A stretch of 48,784 nucleotides of DNA from Ministeria vibrans ATCC 50519 (GCA_943704425.1 CALSCP010001788.1:1-48784), one strand, 5' to 3'; positions 1 through 7,716 are shown, counted from the stretch's first letter. The notes: generated by a model not told the origin, from the sequence alone. Program-made: numbers and translations.

Positions 1-133
1 TTTTTTTTTTTTTTTCATCTTGCCTTGTTTGTGGACATTGTGGCAATGTTTTTATTTTTTAATGATAATTTTGATGTTGTTAAAATTGTCTTGGACTCAA
101 AGCCTCTTTTCTTCTCTCGCGCCTGTTGAACAG

Positions 134-3100
134 GACCCCTCCGGCACGGTCACTGTCGATGGTGAGGTGAATGCAGGCATCATTCTCTTGAGTGGGGCGA
201 TTTTACTCGACAATATTGACTCGGCGATTCTCTTTGGCGCTGACCCCTGCGATTTTGCCTCGTGCGACTCCTCCCCATGCCTTTCCGGCGGCAGCTGCTC
301 TACAACCGACGCGGGTCCCGTCTGCGCGTGCGTCGCGGGCTACACGGGCGAGTTTTGCGCATCTAATATCAACGAGTGTGTCTCGTCGCCCTGTCTCAAC
401 AACGCCACTTGCGTCGACGCCGGCAATGGCTTCTCGTGCACCTGTGCGCCAGGCTACTTTGGCAACCTGTGCGAAGCCGACACCGACGAGTGCCAGAGTT
501 CTCCGTGTGTCTATGCTTCGACGTGTACCGACGTTGCGAATGGATTTCTGTGCACCTGCCTGGATGGCTACACAGGAGCCGCCTGTGATGCGGATATTGA
601 TGAGTGCGCTTCGAATCCTTGTCAAAATTTCGGCTCCTGTCTTGATTTGGTTAATTCCTTCTCATGCGAGTGTTTTTCTGGCTATGGCGGGCCCTTGTGT
701 GAGACAAACATCGACGAGTGCCTTTCGTTTCCCTGCCAAAACGGCGCGAGTTGCAACGACGCAGCCTACTCTTACACCTGCACCTGCCCGTCGGGTGTTA
801 CCGGCAGTCATTGCGAGTCGGATGTCGACGAGTGTCTAAGCGACCCGTGCGTGAACGGCGCGACGTGTGTCAACGCCGACGACAAATTCTTGTGCACCTG
901 TCCTCTCGGCTACACAGGCCTCTCGTGCGACATCGATATCAACGAGTGTGCTTCGTCGCCCTGCCTGAACCAGGGAACATGCGGCATGTCAGTGGTTGCC
1001 AACGACTACATTTGCGTCTGTCCAGACGGCTTCACCGGTGCCAACTGCGAAACCAACATTGACGAGTGCGCCAGCAACCCGTGCACCAACGGCGGTACCT
1101 GCACCGACGACATCTGGGCGTACGCCTGTACTTGCCCGACCGGTTTTGCCGGCGACGAATGCGAAACCAACGTTGACGAGTGCGCGAGTAGCCCCTGTCT
1201 TGCCAGCGGTACCTGTACGGACAAGGCAAATGGATTTATCTGTCAATGTCCCGAGGGTATCACTGGTGCCATCTGCGAGACCGACACGCGCCCATGTGCT
1301 TCATCACCCTGTCAAAACACGGGCACATGTACGCAGACGGGGACGTCTACATTTGTCTGTACTTGCTCCAGCGCCTACTCAGGTTTCTTTTGCGAGACAC
1401 CACTCAGCGGCTGTCAAATTTACGCATGTCTCAATGGTGGCGTATGCGACTCCACCTACCAGTGTGTGTGTGCCACCGGCTTTGACGGCGACGACTGTTC
1501 CAACAACTGTGGCATCACCCCGTGCGCCACGTCTGCCATCAGAGACATCCCTGTTCCAACATGGTCCCTTCCTGCTACGTGGGACGGCTCCGTGCCTGCC
1601 CTGTGCACAGCCGTCGATCTCGAGAACCTCGTACCAATTCCATTTGTTCTCATACTCTTTTTTTTTTCTCTCACAACCAACGTCCTTTTTTTCATTTTTT
1701 TTTTCAGGATCCCTCAAGCAGCAACTACATTGGCCAAGAGAACATACTTCTCGATGGTGTTGGCGCCGCACACACCATTTTGCTTGGCGGCTCCATTGTA
1801 TTCGACGCCGATGACTCGGTGTTGATCTTTGGTGAGGGGGCATGCTCAGTACCACAGGCACTGTGTGCTTCGTCATCTTGTGCCAACGGTGCCAGCTGCA
1901 CCGACAATCCCATTGAGTACTGGTGTACCTGCGCTGAAGGCTACACTGGCACTCAGTGCGAAATACTTGACGATAGATGTGCCTCTAGCCCATGTCATAA
2001 CAACGCCACTTGCTCGTGGGCGCAAAACAGTTTTAGTTGTGCGTGTGTCGCAGGATTCACCGGTGCCTTCTGCGAGGTTAACATTGACGAGTGTGACTCG
2101 TCACCGTGTCACTCAACGGCCACCTGTAACAATCTCGTGGGCTCTTTCAACTGTTCGTGTGCTCCGGGATACACGGAAGCTCGCTGCGACGCGGACGTGA
2201 ACGAGTGTGACGCGTTCCCCTGTCTTCACGGTGGCTCGTGTTTCAATTCGATAGGCAGCTTTTCGTGTGTGTGTGCCGACGGATTTACCGGCGCCGTGTG
2301 CGAGTCTGACATTGACGAGTGTGCGTCATTTCCATGCGAGAATGACGGCACGTGTGGCCAGGCGGGCGTCGTCGAGATACCGTGGTGCCTCTCCTGCTCG
2401 GGGTTTCCCATCTTAAGCGACGTTCATGTCGGCGACTTGGTGCGCTGGACTGTGAGCGACGGTCCACACACGGTGACGACCGTACCTGGAGCCCCCACAT
2501 CGTTTGACTCGGGCTTTATCACGACCGGAATCTACGAGCAAGTCATGTCTACTGTCGGATCAATCGACTACCAATGCGACGTTCACCCCACAGCCATGAT
2601 TGGAACGCTCAACGTCTTCCCCGCGCCCAGTGGCGGCCAGGGTCGTTTTACCTGCACATGCAACTCTGGCTATACTGGCGTCACGTGCGAGTCTGACGTT
2701 GACGAGTGTGCGTCGAGCCCTTGCCTCAATGGCGCGACGTGCGTGGACAGTGTCGACGGCTTTTCTTGCAGCTGTGTTGTGGGCTACAGTGGCGTCCTAT
2801 GCGAGACTGATGTGGCCGAGTGTGACTCGTCGCCGTGTGTCAATGGCGGCATCTGCGTCGACGAGTTAGATGGATTTGCGTGCAACTGTTCCTCGGGATT
2901 TAGCGGTGATATGTGCGAGGTGAACCTGTCCTATTGCTCCGAGCAGAATGCGTGCAACAGCGTCGGTGCGTGCAACACGACGGCGAACATCAATCCGTGT
3001 ACATGCTTGTCAGGCTACACCGGCATGTTTTGCGAGACTGAAATTGACGAGTGTGCGTCGAGCCCTTGCCTCAATGGCGCGACGTGCGTGGACAGTGTCG

Positions 3101-6100
3101 ACGGCTTTTCTTGCAGTTGTAATGCGGGTTTTACTGGGCGTTGGTGTGCGAGCGACATTGATGAGTGTATGTCGTCGCCATGCGTCAATAGTGGCACTTG
3201 CAGCAACGATGCAGGGTCATTCACGTGTGACTGTGTCGAGGGCTTTCGTGGAAGTCTTTGTGAAAACAATGTCATCTATTGCGATATGGCGGACCCATGT
3301 AACAATGCGGGCGTGTGCAACGACACAATCAAAGTGAATCCTTGCACATGTCACGCCGGCTTCGTCGGTATTTTTTGCGAGACGGATGTGGACGAGTGCG
3401 CTTCGGCGCCCTGTCTCAATGGTGCAAGTTGCCTTGACAGTGTCAACAATTTTACATGTGTATGCGTTGCTGGCTACACCGGCGTCCAATGCGAGACGGA
3501 CATCAACGAGTGCCAGTCTGATCCGTGCAGCAATGGTGGCGTCTGTTCCGACGCTATCAACGGTTTCACGTGTACCTGTGATAGCACAGGCTACACCGGC
3601 AGTCTCTGTGAGTCGTTGTTGACCGACCATTGTTCAAGCTCGCCTTGCGTTGGCACGGCCACGTGTCAATCGCTCGCCGCTCAGTTTGAGTGCACCTGTC
3701 CCACTGGCTACACCGGCCAGAACTGCTCCGCCAAAATTGACGAGTGCGCTTCGGCGCCCTGTCTCAATGGTGGCGTGTGTATGGACAACTTGGACTCCTT
3801 TGTGTGTATGTGCACTTCTGGTTACGCCGGTGACACCTGCGAGCTTGCTGATACGTGCGCCTCGTCGCCGTGTGTCAATAGTGCGGCGTGCACAAACTCG
3901 GTGGACGGACCTGTGTGCGTCTGTGGCACCAAGTTTACGGGTGTATTTTGTGAGCAGCTACTCACCGCGTGCAACAGTGGTACTGCCCCGTGTGCCAACG
4001 GCGGCACATGTTCACCATTTGTGGACACTTTTAATTGTACGTGCGCGCCTGGCTTTACCGGCAGTATGTGCGAGATCAGCGTTGACGAGTGTGTACCGCA
4101 GCCGTGTCTGAATGGCGCCACCTGTGAAGATGGAATTTTGTCATATATCTGTGTATGCACCACCGGCTATGAAGGCTTGCTATGCGATCGTGAAGTGATG
4201 ACGGGCTCTTGCAGCGTCGGCAGTGCACCATGCCAGAACAACGCGACGTGTGTCGACGTCACTACCGGTTATTATTACTGTGTGTGTGCCGCAGGCCACA
4301 CCGGCTCCGCCTGCGAGCACATTGACCAGTGCGCAAGCGACCCGTGCCTGAACGGAGCAAGCTGCGTCTCTGCCTCTGGCTCACATACGTGTGTGTGTGT
4401 TGCGGGCTTTACCGGTGGCGTTTGCGAGACCACCGTCGAGTGTGACTCGTCGCCGTGCAGGAACGGCGGCAGCTGCGTCGACCTGGGTACCGCTTTTTCG
4501 TGTATATGTGCAGCAGGGTTTACGGGTGTTACGTGCCAGGTGGACATTGACGAGTGTGCCAGCAGCCCGTGTCAGAATGGTGCCACCTGTATCGACCTAT
4601 TACATAGATTCAGCTGTAACTGCGTGGCAGGTTTTACTGGCGATCTATGCGCGACCGACATTGACGAGTGTGCGTCGGCCCCGTGTCCCCTGGTCGCCGT
4701 TTGTGTGGACCAAGTCAATGGCTTCAGCTGCGCCAGTGGCTGCCTCTCGATGCCCGTGCCGCCGTTTGCGACAGCTGTCAATGCAACGACCAGCCCGTAC
4801 CTGTTGGGCCAGGTGGTTGCCTCCGAGTGCAACACCGGCTACGAAACATCCTTGGCAGCCGGCTTCACCACCGTCTACACGCGGTGTCTTGGTAACGATC
4901 CGGCGGTCCACTCCGACTCGTGTATACCCGTGGTCTGTGGCGTGCTGCCAGGCGCGACTGGCCCAGGCACGGTGGGCCCCAACACCGGGAGTGCATCCGT
5001 ATCGTTCGCCTCCGACGGCGGTGTGTACTCGTGCAGTCCGGGCTACACAACAACGGGCGTGGTGGACGGCTCTTCATCCTACCGTGTCACTTGCGATGCC
5101 AATGGCACTTTTGTGGGCGACACAACGTCGTCAACGTGCCAACGGATTGTTTGTCCTGCTCTGCCACGACCAACTGACTCTCTCTTCTACATGACCGCGT
5201 CGACAGCGACCAGCGGTGTGACGTACCTCTATGGCGACCGGTTTAGCTACGAGTGTGACGCGGGCTTTACACTGTCCGGACGCGTCGATCAGACCACGAG
5301 GCTCTCGTACGAATGTAGTGCGACGGGCAGATGGACGGTCATCAGTAATGCGGCGACGGACAGCGTAACATGTACATTTGCCTGCAACACGACGCTCCTG
5401 ACGGAGAAACGCATCAATCCCCTCACCGGCGGCCAACTGCTCATTCCTGGCGAAGTCCACATCACCGTACCCGAGTTCTTTGGACCGGTCTCGACGCTTT
5501 TCCAGATCGAATCGTACCCCGTCTCGTGTCGCACCAATGCGCCGTCGGGTGCAGAGGCCAAATCGGAGTGGTATCGATTGCGTCCGTCGCCGCGTCTGTG
5601 GAGCCGTAACATTACTATTATGATGACCATGACAGCCGGCTCCTACTCTGCGCAGGATCATCCCTCAAACTTTTCCGTGATGTACGGCGATGGGGGCTCA
5701 TCGCTGTCGTGGGATCACGCGTTGGACACGACGGTGGATTTCAATACTGGCAAGATACGGGGACTCATGTCGCACTTTAGCGTCGTTGCAGCCTTTGGCA
5801 ATGTGACCAACCCGACAGGCACGACGCCCGTGACGAACGCGTCTGTGCCGACATCGTCGTCGTTCCCCATCATTGCCATTGTCATTGCCATTTTGCTGCT
5901 ACTTATTGTCATCATTGTGGTGCTGGTGTTGCGTCGCCGACGACGCAAACATGGCCACGGACTCAAGCGGCTGCGGGTGCATGGCGACTCGCGCATGAGC
6001 ATGTCCAGCATGACGAGTGTGGTACCGGAGGAGCACGACACATCTCACGTGGGCATTCAGCTCAACGAGTTGCATGTACAACCGGACGTGTCGCCCGTGC

Positions 6101-7716
6101 AGCTCGTTCAGACGAACCAGTACGATCGGCAGTCGTCGTCGGATGCGCCTTTCACTTTCAACGCCAACTCAGCCATGTACGAGCCGACCAACGACGGACT
6201 GCGTACCCACGAGTCCAACCAGTACCAGGGCATGGACAACAGCGATCGAAGCTCAGGTGCGCCCAGCAGTCACTACCAGTACTTTGTGGGTAACCCGAGT
6301 CGTCGCACGTCTGCGGCGGGCGATGTGGGCGGCACCGGTGTGGTGCCGCTGTACGAGCGTGTTGCCGATGGCTACGGCGGCTCCATGTACAGTGCGACGG
6401 CGTCGTCGGCAGGCTATGCGACGCTCGACTCGGAGCCCACCAGTGACGAGGTTGCTGCGTACGGCACGTTTGGGTTGCGCAGTGGCTCCAAGGCAGTGCG
6501 TCGCGGTAATCGCGAGTTTGACGAGTTCAAGCGACACATTAGCGTGCACGCGACGGTGCCTCCTGTCATTGACGAGGACTCCTCCCTGTCCACGCGCCCC
6601 TCCACGGTCGCGGATGGATCCACTGCAGCAGCGATCTCGGGCAGTTCGTTTGGTGGCAACAGCGAGGGCAGCTATGCGTATGCGATGTCGTCGGTGGCGT
6701 CGACGAGCCAGGAGGAGCCCGAGTACCGCTTTGTGGCGCCGGCCATGCGGGAGGAGTATATCTCGTTTATGGCGCCCAACGCAGACATTGTGCCCGACTA
6801 CGCGGGCGAGGTGACGCGCGACCACATCATCTTTGGGGCGCAGTTGGGTGGCGGTAGCTTTGGCGTGGTGCTGCGCGGGCGACTAATGCCGACCCCCAAT
6901 GCGACCGAGGGCGGACGCGATGTTGCGCTCAAGATGCTCACGACGGCCGACAAGGAGTGGGAAGTGTATGCGTTCAAGAAGGAGGTCGGCATGCTGGAGA
7001 AGCTGCGCCACCCACACATTACAACGATGGTTGCTAAGGTGACGGGTGGTGACGACCCGACGCGCTGGATCATTGTAATGGAGTTGGCACGCGGCTCGCT
7101 CCTGTCGCACCTGCAGAACCGCCCGGTGATGCCGGCCGACCAAATGTACATGACGCTTCAGATTGTATCGGGCTGTCGCTACCTCATGTCCATGAACGTT
7201 GTCCACCGTGACCTTGCGGCGCGCAACTGCCTTGTGTTCCGCAGCAACGACGGTCGCCAGCTCGTCGTCAAGATCACCGACTTTGGTCTGACGCGTGATC
7301 TTGCGCCCGTCGACCCCAACGCGGGTCGCTGGAACGCCGCCTACCAGCAGTCTCATGTGAGTTTGCTGCCCCCGGCCGCCCCTCCGGAGATGATGGAGCG
7401 CGGTGAGTCGTCCGAGAAGTCCGACGTGTTCCTCTTTGGCTTCCTCCTGTGGGAGATCTACTCGCTCGGCGACGAAATCCCTTTCGCGACGCCTTACCAC
7501 CTGGCGCTTTTTGGCAACCCACAGCGCCGACTGCCGCGTCTCGCGTGCCACGAGCGCATCATGAATCTCATCGACCGCTGCCTGCAGTACTCGCCTACTC
7601 TGCGTCCGACTTTTGAGGGTGTGGAGCGTGCCATGCACGACTTGTCGCGCAGCATCACCGAGGAGGATCGCACTCTGCGCCTGCGCTACGGCATTGAAGG
7701 CGAAACCATTGCCTAA
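134..7716 (+). CDS. Giant single-pass receptor tyrosine kinase, 5'-partial (about 34 EGF-like repeats, G8-like modules, cupredoxin insert, Sushi-like repeats, ZU5-like domain, TM, Tyr-rich juxtamembrane region, TK domain)
   Basis: Exons 134-1630 and 1708-7716 are joined in frame by a phase-0 GT-AG intron (1631-1707); the upstream acceptor is CAG at 131-133. Repeats have the calcium-binding EGF pattern D/N-I/V-D/N-E-C. TM IIAIVIAILLLLIVIIVVLVL (5869-5931) is followed by RRRRRK. Kinase motifs GGGSFG, VALK, HRDLAARN, DFG lie at about 6820-7640. Confidence 0.93.
2699..3116 (+). repeat. 73-nt exact direct repeat inside the EGF array (2699-2771 and 3044-3116)
   Basis: ttgacgagtgtgcgtcgagcc...cttttcttgcag is identical in both copies, including synonymous positions. 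A second 34-nt identical pair occurs at 3391 and 3739. Confidence 0.9.

Follow-up and report, generated by a model that had tools for sequence, protein, structure and literature searches.

Self-cleaving juxtamembrane domains are known from the adhesion G-protein-coupled receptors (GPCRs) and PKD1, in which the domain is GAIN, and from mucins, in which it is SEA, while in Notch a cut made by furin falls in a similar place. Both the SEA domains and the furin-cut heterodimerisation domain of Notch lie next to the membrane and make a single-pass receptor a force-sensitive, non-covalent two-chain protein. Extracellular ZU5-like domains are said to have been noted in CILP and FAM171 by Liao and colleagues in 2014. 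ZU5 domains, the GAIN sandwich and Nup98 have been united in one autoproteolytic superfamily (Zhang et al., 2012; PMC3482391), and the same union was made by Liao et al. (2014), as cited in a passage of PMC11697300. In the relatives described in the literature, a Ser or Thr attacks the preceding carbonyl, a buried Phe or Leu holds the strained turn and a His helps as base (PMC3210808, PMC3321182), and the two fragments are held together by the inserted strand. Here we describe a stretch of DNA of 48,784 nucleotides from Ministeria vibrans ATCC 50519 (GCA_943704425.1 CALSCP010001788.1:1-48784; the whole stretch is called the window below), in which an EGF-rich receptor tyrosine kinase (RTK) with a single transmembrane (TM) helix and a cytoplasmic kinase domain is encoded. 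The domain preceding its TM helix probably represents an extracellular, membrane-proximal member of the ZU5/GAIN-subdomain-B/Nup98 superfamily with the ancestral His-Phe-Ser (HFS) site intact. What is new is the receptor tyrosine kinase architecture of an already known autoproteolytic-type domain; the literature searched gave no report of a self-cleaving juxtamembrane domain in any RTK and no paper assigning ZU5 to an RTK or to a receptor of unicellular animal relatives, and the 2025 eLife survey of GPCRs in unicellular animal relatives did not surface in the searches for ZU5.

The window is contig C1788, one of the 2860 contigs of the 29.7 Mb assembly, and its features are collected in Table 1. 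In the main open frame, 18 EGF stretches and one tyrosine-kinase domain were recognised by Pfam. The ZU5-like domain begins about 10 residues after the end of the Sushi repeat (around 5337), and 30 residues separate the Ser of HFS from the start of the TM helix at 5869; the initial annotation, made from the sequence alone, had placed HFS about 30 residues before the TM helix, and the frame was found to read as quoted there. As the EGF and Sushi repeats lie on one side of the TM helix and the kinase on the other, the ZU5-like domain is extracellular and membrane-proximal.

To describe the fold of the domain, an AlphaFold2 model was built with A1, an alignment of 13 copies from the same genome, as input. 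The model was all-beta with eleven strands (mean predicted local distance difference test score, pLDDT, 90; predicted template modelling score, pTM, 0.85), and HFS formed the turn joining the last two strands. When the model was compared with the PDB by Foldseek, ankyrin ZU5 domains came out on top (E 1.5e-6 to 2e-5, TM-score 0.60-0.69), followed by the ZU5 domain of UNC5b, the GAIN domains of BAI3, CD97, BAI2 and CELSR1, the ZO-1 ZU5 domain and the rat NLRP1 FIIND. Alignment with VIA-align gave a Z of 13.6 to ankyrin-B ZU5 (4d8o; root-mean-square deviation 2.5 A over 132 residues), 10.1 to the CD97 GAIN domain, 9.3 to the rat NLRP1 FIIND and 8.0 to UNC5b, and the CARD8 FIIND matched at 8.2. 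Furthermore, a search of 48,161 PDB chains that was independent of Foldseek placed ankyrin ZU5 first (Z about 13; 13.1-13.6 for ankyrin ZU5 over both comparisons), and 17 of its top 20 chains were ZU5, GAIN or FIIND; in the same search the Nup98 and Nup145 domains reached Z 4.0-4.8, and unrelated sandwiches began at Z 5 and lower. The initial annotation had proposed a ZU5-like domain between the Sushi repeats and the TM helix and had named structure prediction against ZU5 as a check; the proposal is borne out by the model, by its top match to ankyrin ZU5 and by a transitive profile link described below, and we regard the assignment of the modelled fold to the ZU5 superfamily as secure. A SEA domain, with its alpha/beta fold and G/SVVV site, was rejected, as the model is all-beta and no SEA domain appeared among the structural matches. 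The remaining 3 of the top 20 chains were axonemal doublet-microtubule chains (8glv_AE, 9fqr_Hn and 9y6s_9f, from Chlamydomonas, bovine sperm and Leishmania), which match the model at Z 6-9.3; this suggests that ZU5/GAIN-like sandwiches also occur in ciliary proteins.

The same comparisons raise the alternative of a GAIN domain that has diverged, because GAIN makes up the second group of structural matches (Z 8-10) and typically stands, like this domain, ahead of a TM helix. Such an origin is very improbable. The helical subdomain A is missing from the all-beta model, the Sushi repeat abuts the domain, neither a Pfam GPS match (PF01825) nor a C-x-C pair was found, and ZU5 scores higher both by structure and by sequence. 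In addition, at least 58 canonical GPS motifs are present elsewhere in the genome, with none in the window, and some of them share contig and strand with a ZU5-HFS copy and precede it. A true GAIN domain was hence rejected for want of both subdomain A and GPS.

At the level of sequence, the link to the ZU5 family was carried by copies elsewhere in the genome. The A1 profile matched ankyrin-1 weakly (E 0.08). Two further alignments were compared, A2 with the six closest RTK copies and A3 with 13 other, more distant ones; hhalign joined them with a probability of 99.2% (E 2.3e-19) and HFS aligned on HFS, and the A3 profile in turn matched the ZU5 domains of ankyrin-2 (E 8.5e-14), ankyrin-1 (6.7e-12), ZO-1 (0.003) and UNC5B (0.02). 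The Pfam ZU5 family PF00791 was found above its curated cut-off at six places of the genome, four of which were also found by A1 (on C1214, C1507, C2584 and C1072), and a copy on C124 combined a Pfam ZU5 match above cut-off with HFS and a following TM helix. In the ESM Atlas a ZU5 cluster appeared at rank 19 with a score of 0.89, a weak lead. Outside this genome, a word-index protein search returned no relative for the whole receptor, scored on the domain, nor for a Pfam-ZU5-positive HFS paralog; phmmer gave 0 matches among 1.84 billion representative sequences, in collections apparently without records of this genome; a metagenome contig search with the single protein gave no relative; and no contig record encoding the frame, in its ATG-start version, was found. 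By these single-sequence searches of limited sensitivity, the domain has no detectable relatives outside this genome.

Inside the genome, the domain is one of a sizeable set of paralogs. A six-frame search with the domain found 14 places and the A1 profile 32, and the A1 copies are 18-49% identical to the window copy. The initial annotation had named conservation of HFS in paralogs as a further check: the motif reads H-[FL]-[ST] in all 13 of the aligned paralogs of A1, and [HS]-[FL]-[ST] in 29 of the approximately 33 copies of the genome (HFS in 21, HLS in 3, HLT in 1, SFS in 4, none in 4). Five columns of A1 were invariant (C6, P35, G132, H136 and F143) and a further four (C54, W115, F137 and S138) were conserved at 90% or more; five of these nine fall within the 12-column terminal hairpin (p = 1.4e-4 for the given window of columns, 0.02 when corrected for all windows). 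In A3 the Ser of the motif was one of only two invariant residues. Its codon was AGY in 17 copies and TCN in 8, with Thr in one copy, and the use of both Ser codon families points to conservation at the protein level rather than to recent gene conversion. A hydrophobic segment follows in all paralogs, and in all copies but one the first such segment lies 13-30 residues after the Ser or Thr. It is clear from this conservation that a chance tripeptide can be ruled out, and the motif is kept as a catalytic motif would be. The start of the domain had been read as a GG-x-L..V-P pattern typical of ZU5; the Pro that comes after the GG was found to be invariant in all copies, but the GG itself only in the closest RTK subfamily.

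These alignments also bear on a reading without any cleavage, in which a ZU5-type fold would work next to the membrane as a stiff spacer or as a module for binding, and HFS would be kept for folding. In its favour, ankyrin, UNC5 and ZO-1 use their ZU5 domains to bind proteins, the A3 profile covers these domains only as far as about profile position 112-116, short of HFS, and uncleaved GAIN structures exist; we hold this reading to be less probable than self-cleavage. It is opposed by the pattern of conservation: the fold does not require the His and Ser, but the His is invariant in A1 and the Ser in A3; the Ser has changed codon family while remaining Ser or Thr; and such substitutions as occur are only those known to function in relatives that cleave, with HLT and HLS from GAIN and SFS from NLRP1 and CARD8.

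Several observations were made on individual paralogs. Just past the last strand, the six closest RTK paralogs share an invariant T-N-P-x-G motif that the more distant copies lack and that could mark a second site of processing or capping. Two of the four copies that lack the motif, on C99 and C1157, have instead an Arg-Arg-Arg run, with a Cys-rich turn after it, close to the C-terminus of the domain; this may be a protease site that replaces self-cleavage. At C1890:92057-95440, two tandem ZU5-like copies without an HFS-type motif were found in a protein rich in Thr-Thr-containing repeats, and at C2085:76933-80223 an HFS copy is followed, in place of a TM helix, by a long run of near-identical 9-residue Thr-rich mucin-type repeats.

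The place of HFS was then compared with known cleavage sites. Alignments of the model to separate cleaved N-terminal fragments stopped at model residue 137, the Phe of HFS, against the chain ends of latrophilin-1 (4dlq_A, residue 837), human NLRP1 (6x6c_E, 1212), Nup98 (1ko6_A, 863), GPR56 (5kvm_A, 382), GPR110 (8hc0_A, 566), latrophilin-3 (8vti_A, 854), GPR97 (7qu8_A, 249), Gpr126 (6v55_A, 827) and the rat NLRP1 FIIND (7crv, 187). The chain ends of GPR56 and GPR110 are presumably their cleavage sites, and the sites confirmed from the literature cover latrophilin-1, NLRP1, Nup98 and rat NLRP1. Latrophilin-1 is cut between L837 and T838, with L856 as the counterpart in BAI3 (PMC3321182); cleavage of NLRP1 requires Ser-1213, the HFS of Nup98 contains H862, and in PIDD the Ser is the nucleophile and the Phe a structural anchor (PMC3210808). 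In the published structure of rat NLRP1 the cut lies between F968 and S969, and the strand after it belongs to the ZU5 sheets. For chains that are not cleaved, a backward count starting at the final aligned residue placed model Ser138 on S857 of BAI3 and S969 of rat NLRP1. Judged on the model, the evidence that HFS sits at the scissile-bond position of Nup98, NLRP1 and GAIN is strong, short of residue-level proof. Taken with the conservation above, this position favours the proposal of the initial annotation that HFS is an autoproteolysis-type motif.

Compared by description only, the ZU5 domains of PIDD1 and UNC5CL resemble the window domain in fold and in carrying HFS at the domain end; they differ in residing in the cytoplasm with UPA and death domains behind them, where the extracellular window domain has one strand, a 30-residue stalk and the TM helix. 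A ZU5-UPA-death-domain supramodule was rejected, as there are only 30 residues from the Ser to the TM helix and the domain is extracellular, opposite the kinase. The FIIND (ZU5-UPA) of NLRP1 and CARD8 matches the model with the Z values given above, the Phe of the motif aligning with F1212 of human NLRP1, and in NLRP1 the strand after the cut stays in the ZU5 sandwich, as would be expected for the window domain. FIIND differs in its SF/S motif, which four paralogs of the window domain share as SFS, in being cytoplasmic and in releasing UPA-CARD. The GAIN domain (with GPS) of adhesion GPCRs and PKD1 is, like the window domain, extracellular, located about 20-30 residues before the first TM helix and equipped with H-[L/F]-[T/S] at its last hairpin; the final strand would likewise remain on the membrane fragment, and window-domain paralogs occupy the GAIN place before 7tm_2. 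Unlike GAIN, the window domain has no helical subdomain A, GPS disulfides or Pfam GPS match, and it is joined to a tyrosine kinase. Nup98 and Nup145 share HFS, and the alignment ends at F863 of Nup98, but the structural match is weak and these proteins belong to the nuclear pore and cytoplasm. Bacterial surface ZU5 autopeptidases of polymorphic toxins are extracytoplasmic as well and have been proposed to release large surface proteins (PMC3482391); likened by description only, they differ in being N-terminal in RHS toxins and in having no kinase. The SEA and Notch heterodimerisation domains, whose folds are unrelated to the window domain, are functional analogues only.

Across the genome the same module recurs in several settings: receptor tyrosine kinases (at least 12), seven-transmembrane (7TM) receptors of the adhesion type, and further single-pass proteins. 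At least 12 ZU5-like copies have kinase motifs or kinase similarity 3' of them. Each of the five closest paralogs has an intron within the HRD-LAARN motif of its kinase, where the window kinase is uninterrupted, and one such paralog kinase exon matched PF07714 at E 6e-50. Four copies lie about 20 residues before a secretin/adhesion-type 7TM region (7tm_2, E 1e-23 to 1e-27; loci in Table 1), and this lends weight to the analogy with adhesion GPCRs drawn at the outset from the sequence alone. Three of these four Pfam-confirmed 7TM copies are preceded by a GPS match at a distance of 0.3-1.3 kb, with contig and strand shared, and a further GPS match lies 1.3 kb upstream of a fifth copy, which is 7TM-like and outside the set examined with Pfam. 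These upstream GPS matches indicate that ZU5-HFS is not simply the GAIN domain of this lineage; ZU5-HFS 7TM receptors with an upstream GPS would carry two self-cleavage modules in series.

For the other single-pass proteins that carry the ZU5-like module, the DNA examined showed no kinase motif, and the basic role of the module may therefore be independent of the cytoplasmic part. This is the ground for a further reading, in which the domain would cleave itself and act as a break-point or shedding device like the SEA domains of mucins, freeing or protecting the ectodomain without control of the kinase. The copy before mucin-like repeats is in keeping with it as well. We consider it a less likely reading, since at least 12 copies are found in kinases and at least four directly before an adhesion-type 7TM region, the place at which GAIN has an established tethered-peptide role, an argument by analogy only.

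We favour self-cleavage of the window protein into an outer fragment with EGF and Sushi repeats and a membrane-bound fragment with stub, TM helix and kinase, as the motif and the model would predict. The Ser hydroxyl would attack the Phe carbonyl while the protein folds in the secretory pathway, with the buried Phe keeping this carbonyl strained and the His acting as base, and the chain would be cut through an N-to-O acyl shift followed by hydrolysis. The EGF/Sushi ectodomain would then be held to the TM-kinase fragment only by the last beta-strand, inserted in the sandwich; this strand would form the new N-terminus of the membrane-bound fragment and would be the positional counterpart of the GAIN tethered peptide. 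More speculatively, pulling or shedding of the outer fragment could free a stub of about 30 residues and alter kinase activity, for example through stub-driven dimerisation or further proteolysis. Control of the kinase by removal of the outer fragment is speculation that we hold to be rather unlikely.

Several points weigh against self-cleavage and its proposed consequences. Cleavage fails to occur in many GAIN domains whose motif is intact. The window copy itself gave no Pfam match at E <= 1, PF00791 included, and none among PDB sequences, so that its link to the ZU5 family is transitive; as no relative was found outside the genome, conservation was measured among paralogs only. The equivalence of the sites was taken from the first and last aligned residues, not from residue-by-residue output. 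The functional half of the initial annotation, comprising cleavage, a heterodimer held non-covalently, loss of the EGF stalk under force and a signal from the exposed peptide to the kinase, is what we infer. An intact motif is no guarantee of cleavage, as some GAIN members are uncleaved, for example in the structure of BAI3 (PMC3321182).

The rest of the gene lies around this domain. The upstream open frame is probably an earlier exon of the same receptor gene; the two frames were searched separately and not as a joined spliced product. As the contig begins at base 1 of the window, the 5' end of the gene and its signal peptide may be outside the contig. Within the EGF array, positions 2326-2690 of the window resemble a small domain of the blue-copper (cupredoxin) type, in which His, Cys, His and Met succeed one another as such a domain would require.

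Table 1. Coordinates of the receptor frames and domains in the window, and of the ZU5-HFS copies that precede a 7TM region on other contigs.
Feature	Position	Strand	Evidence
Upstream open frame, 11 EGF repeats	20..1822	+	Pfam EGF, E 1.7e-69
Main open frame, 2064 codons: EGF array, Sushi, ZU5-like domain, TM helix, tyrosine kinase	1522..7716	+	Frame reading and Pfam
Sushi/CCP repeat, directly 5' of the ZU5-like domain	5152..5337	+	PF00084, E 1.6e-10
ZU5-superfamily beta-sandwich, extracellular juxtamembrane, 151 residues, 11 strands (modelled)	5368..5820	+	AlphaFold, structural alignment, hhalign
His-Phe-Ser, predicted autoproteolytic site	5773..5781	+	Turn between last two model strands
Predicted scissile bond	Between Phe (5776-5778) and Ser (5779-5781)	+	Alignment to cleaved fragments
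Last beta-strand of sandwich, short, hydrophobic, starting at the Ser of HFS	5779..5799	+	Model strand E139-144, pLDDT about 90
T-N-P-x-G motif	5806..5820	+	Invariant in six closest RTK paralogs
Ser/Thr/Pro-rich stalk with N-x-S sequon	5821..5868	+	Sequence reading
Single TM helix	5869..5931	+	Sequence reading
Polybasic stop-transfer run	5932-5949	+	Sequence reading
Cytoplasmic tyrosine-kinase domain, residues 1771-2036, HRDLAARN and DFG motifs	6832..7629	+	PF07714, E 1.7e-50
ZU5-HFS and 7tm_2 locus	C2066:2000-8500		
ZU5-HFS and 7tm_2 locus	C2584:16900-19614		
ZU5-HFS and 7tm_2 locus	C572:73700-80300		
ZU5-HFS and 7tm_2 locus	C1103:19700-26250		

Should the domain prove to cleave, shedding or the sensing of force would have been coupled directly to phosphotyrosine signalling in this lineage, and the ancestral HFS form of the ZU5/GAIN superfamily would be seen to work outside the cell in a eukaryote. 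The occurrence of ZU5-HFS at the GAIN place in adhesion-type GPCRs offers a concrete system for the origin of GAIN and its tethered agonist, and such 7TM receptors would bear on the descent of GAIN from an HFS ancestor. A wider and tentative view, to which we give only limited credence, is that the HFS domain is a general juxtamembrane cassette that gives two-chain, force-sensitive tyrosine kinases, adhesion-type 7TM receptors and single-pass EGF proteins, with loss of the outer fragment switching the kinase on. If this is true, the receptor encoded in the window would be a mechanosensing 'adhesion RTK', the term under which it was initially annotated, without counterpart in animals.

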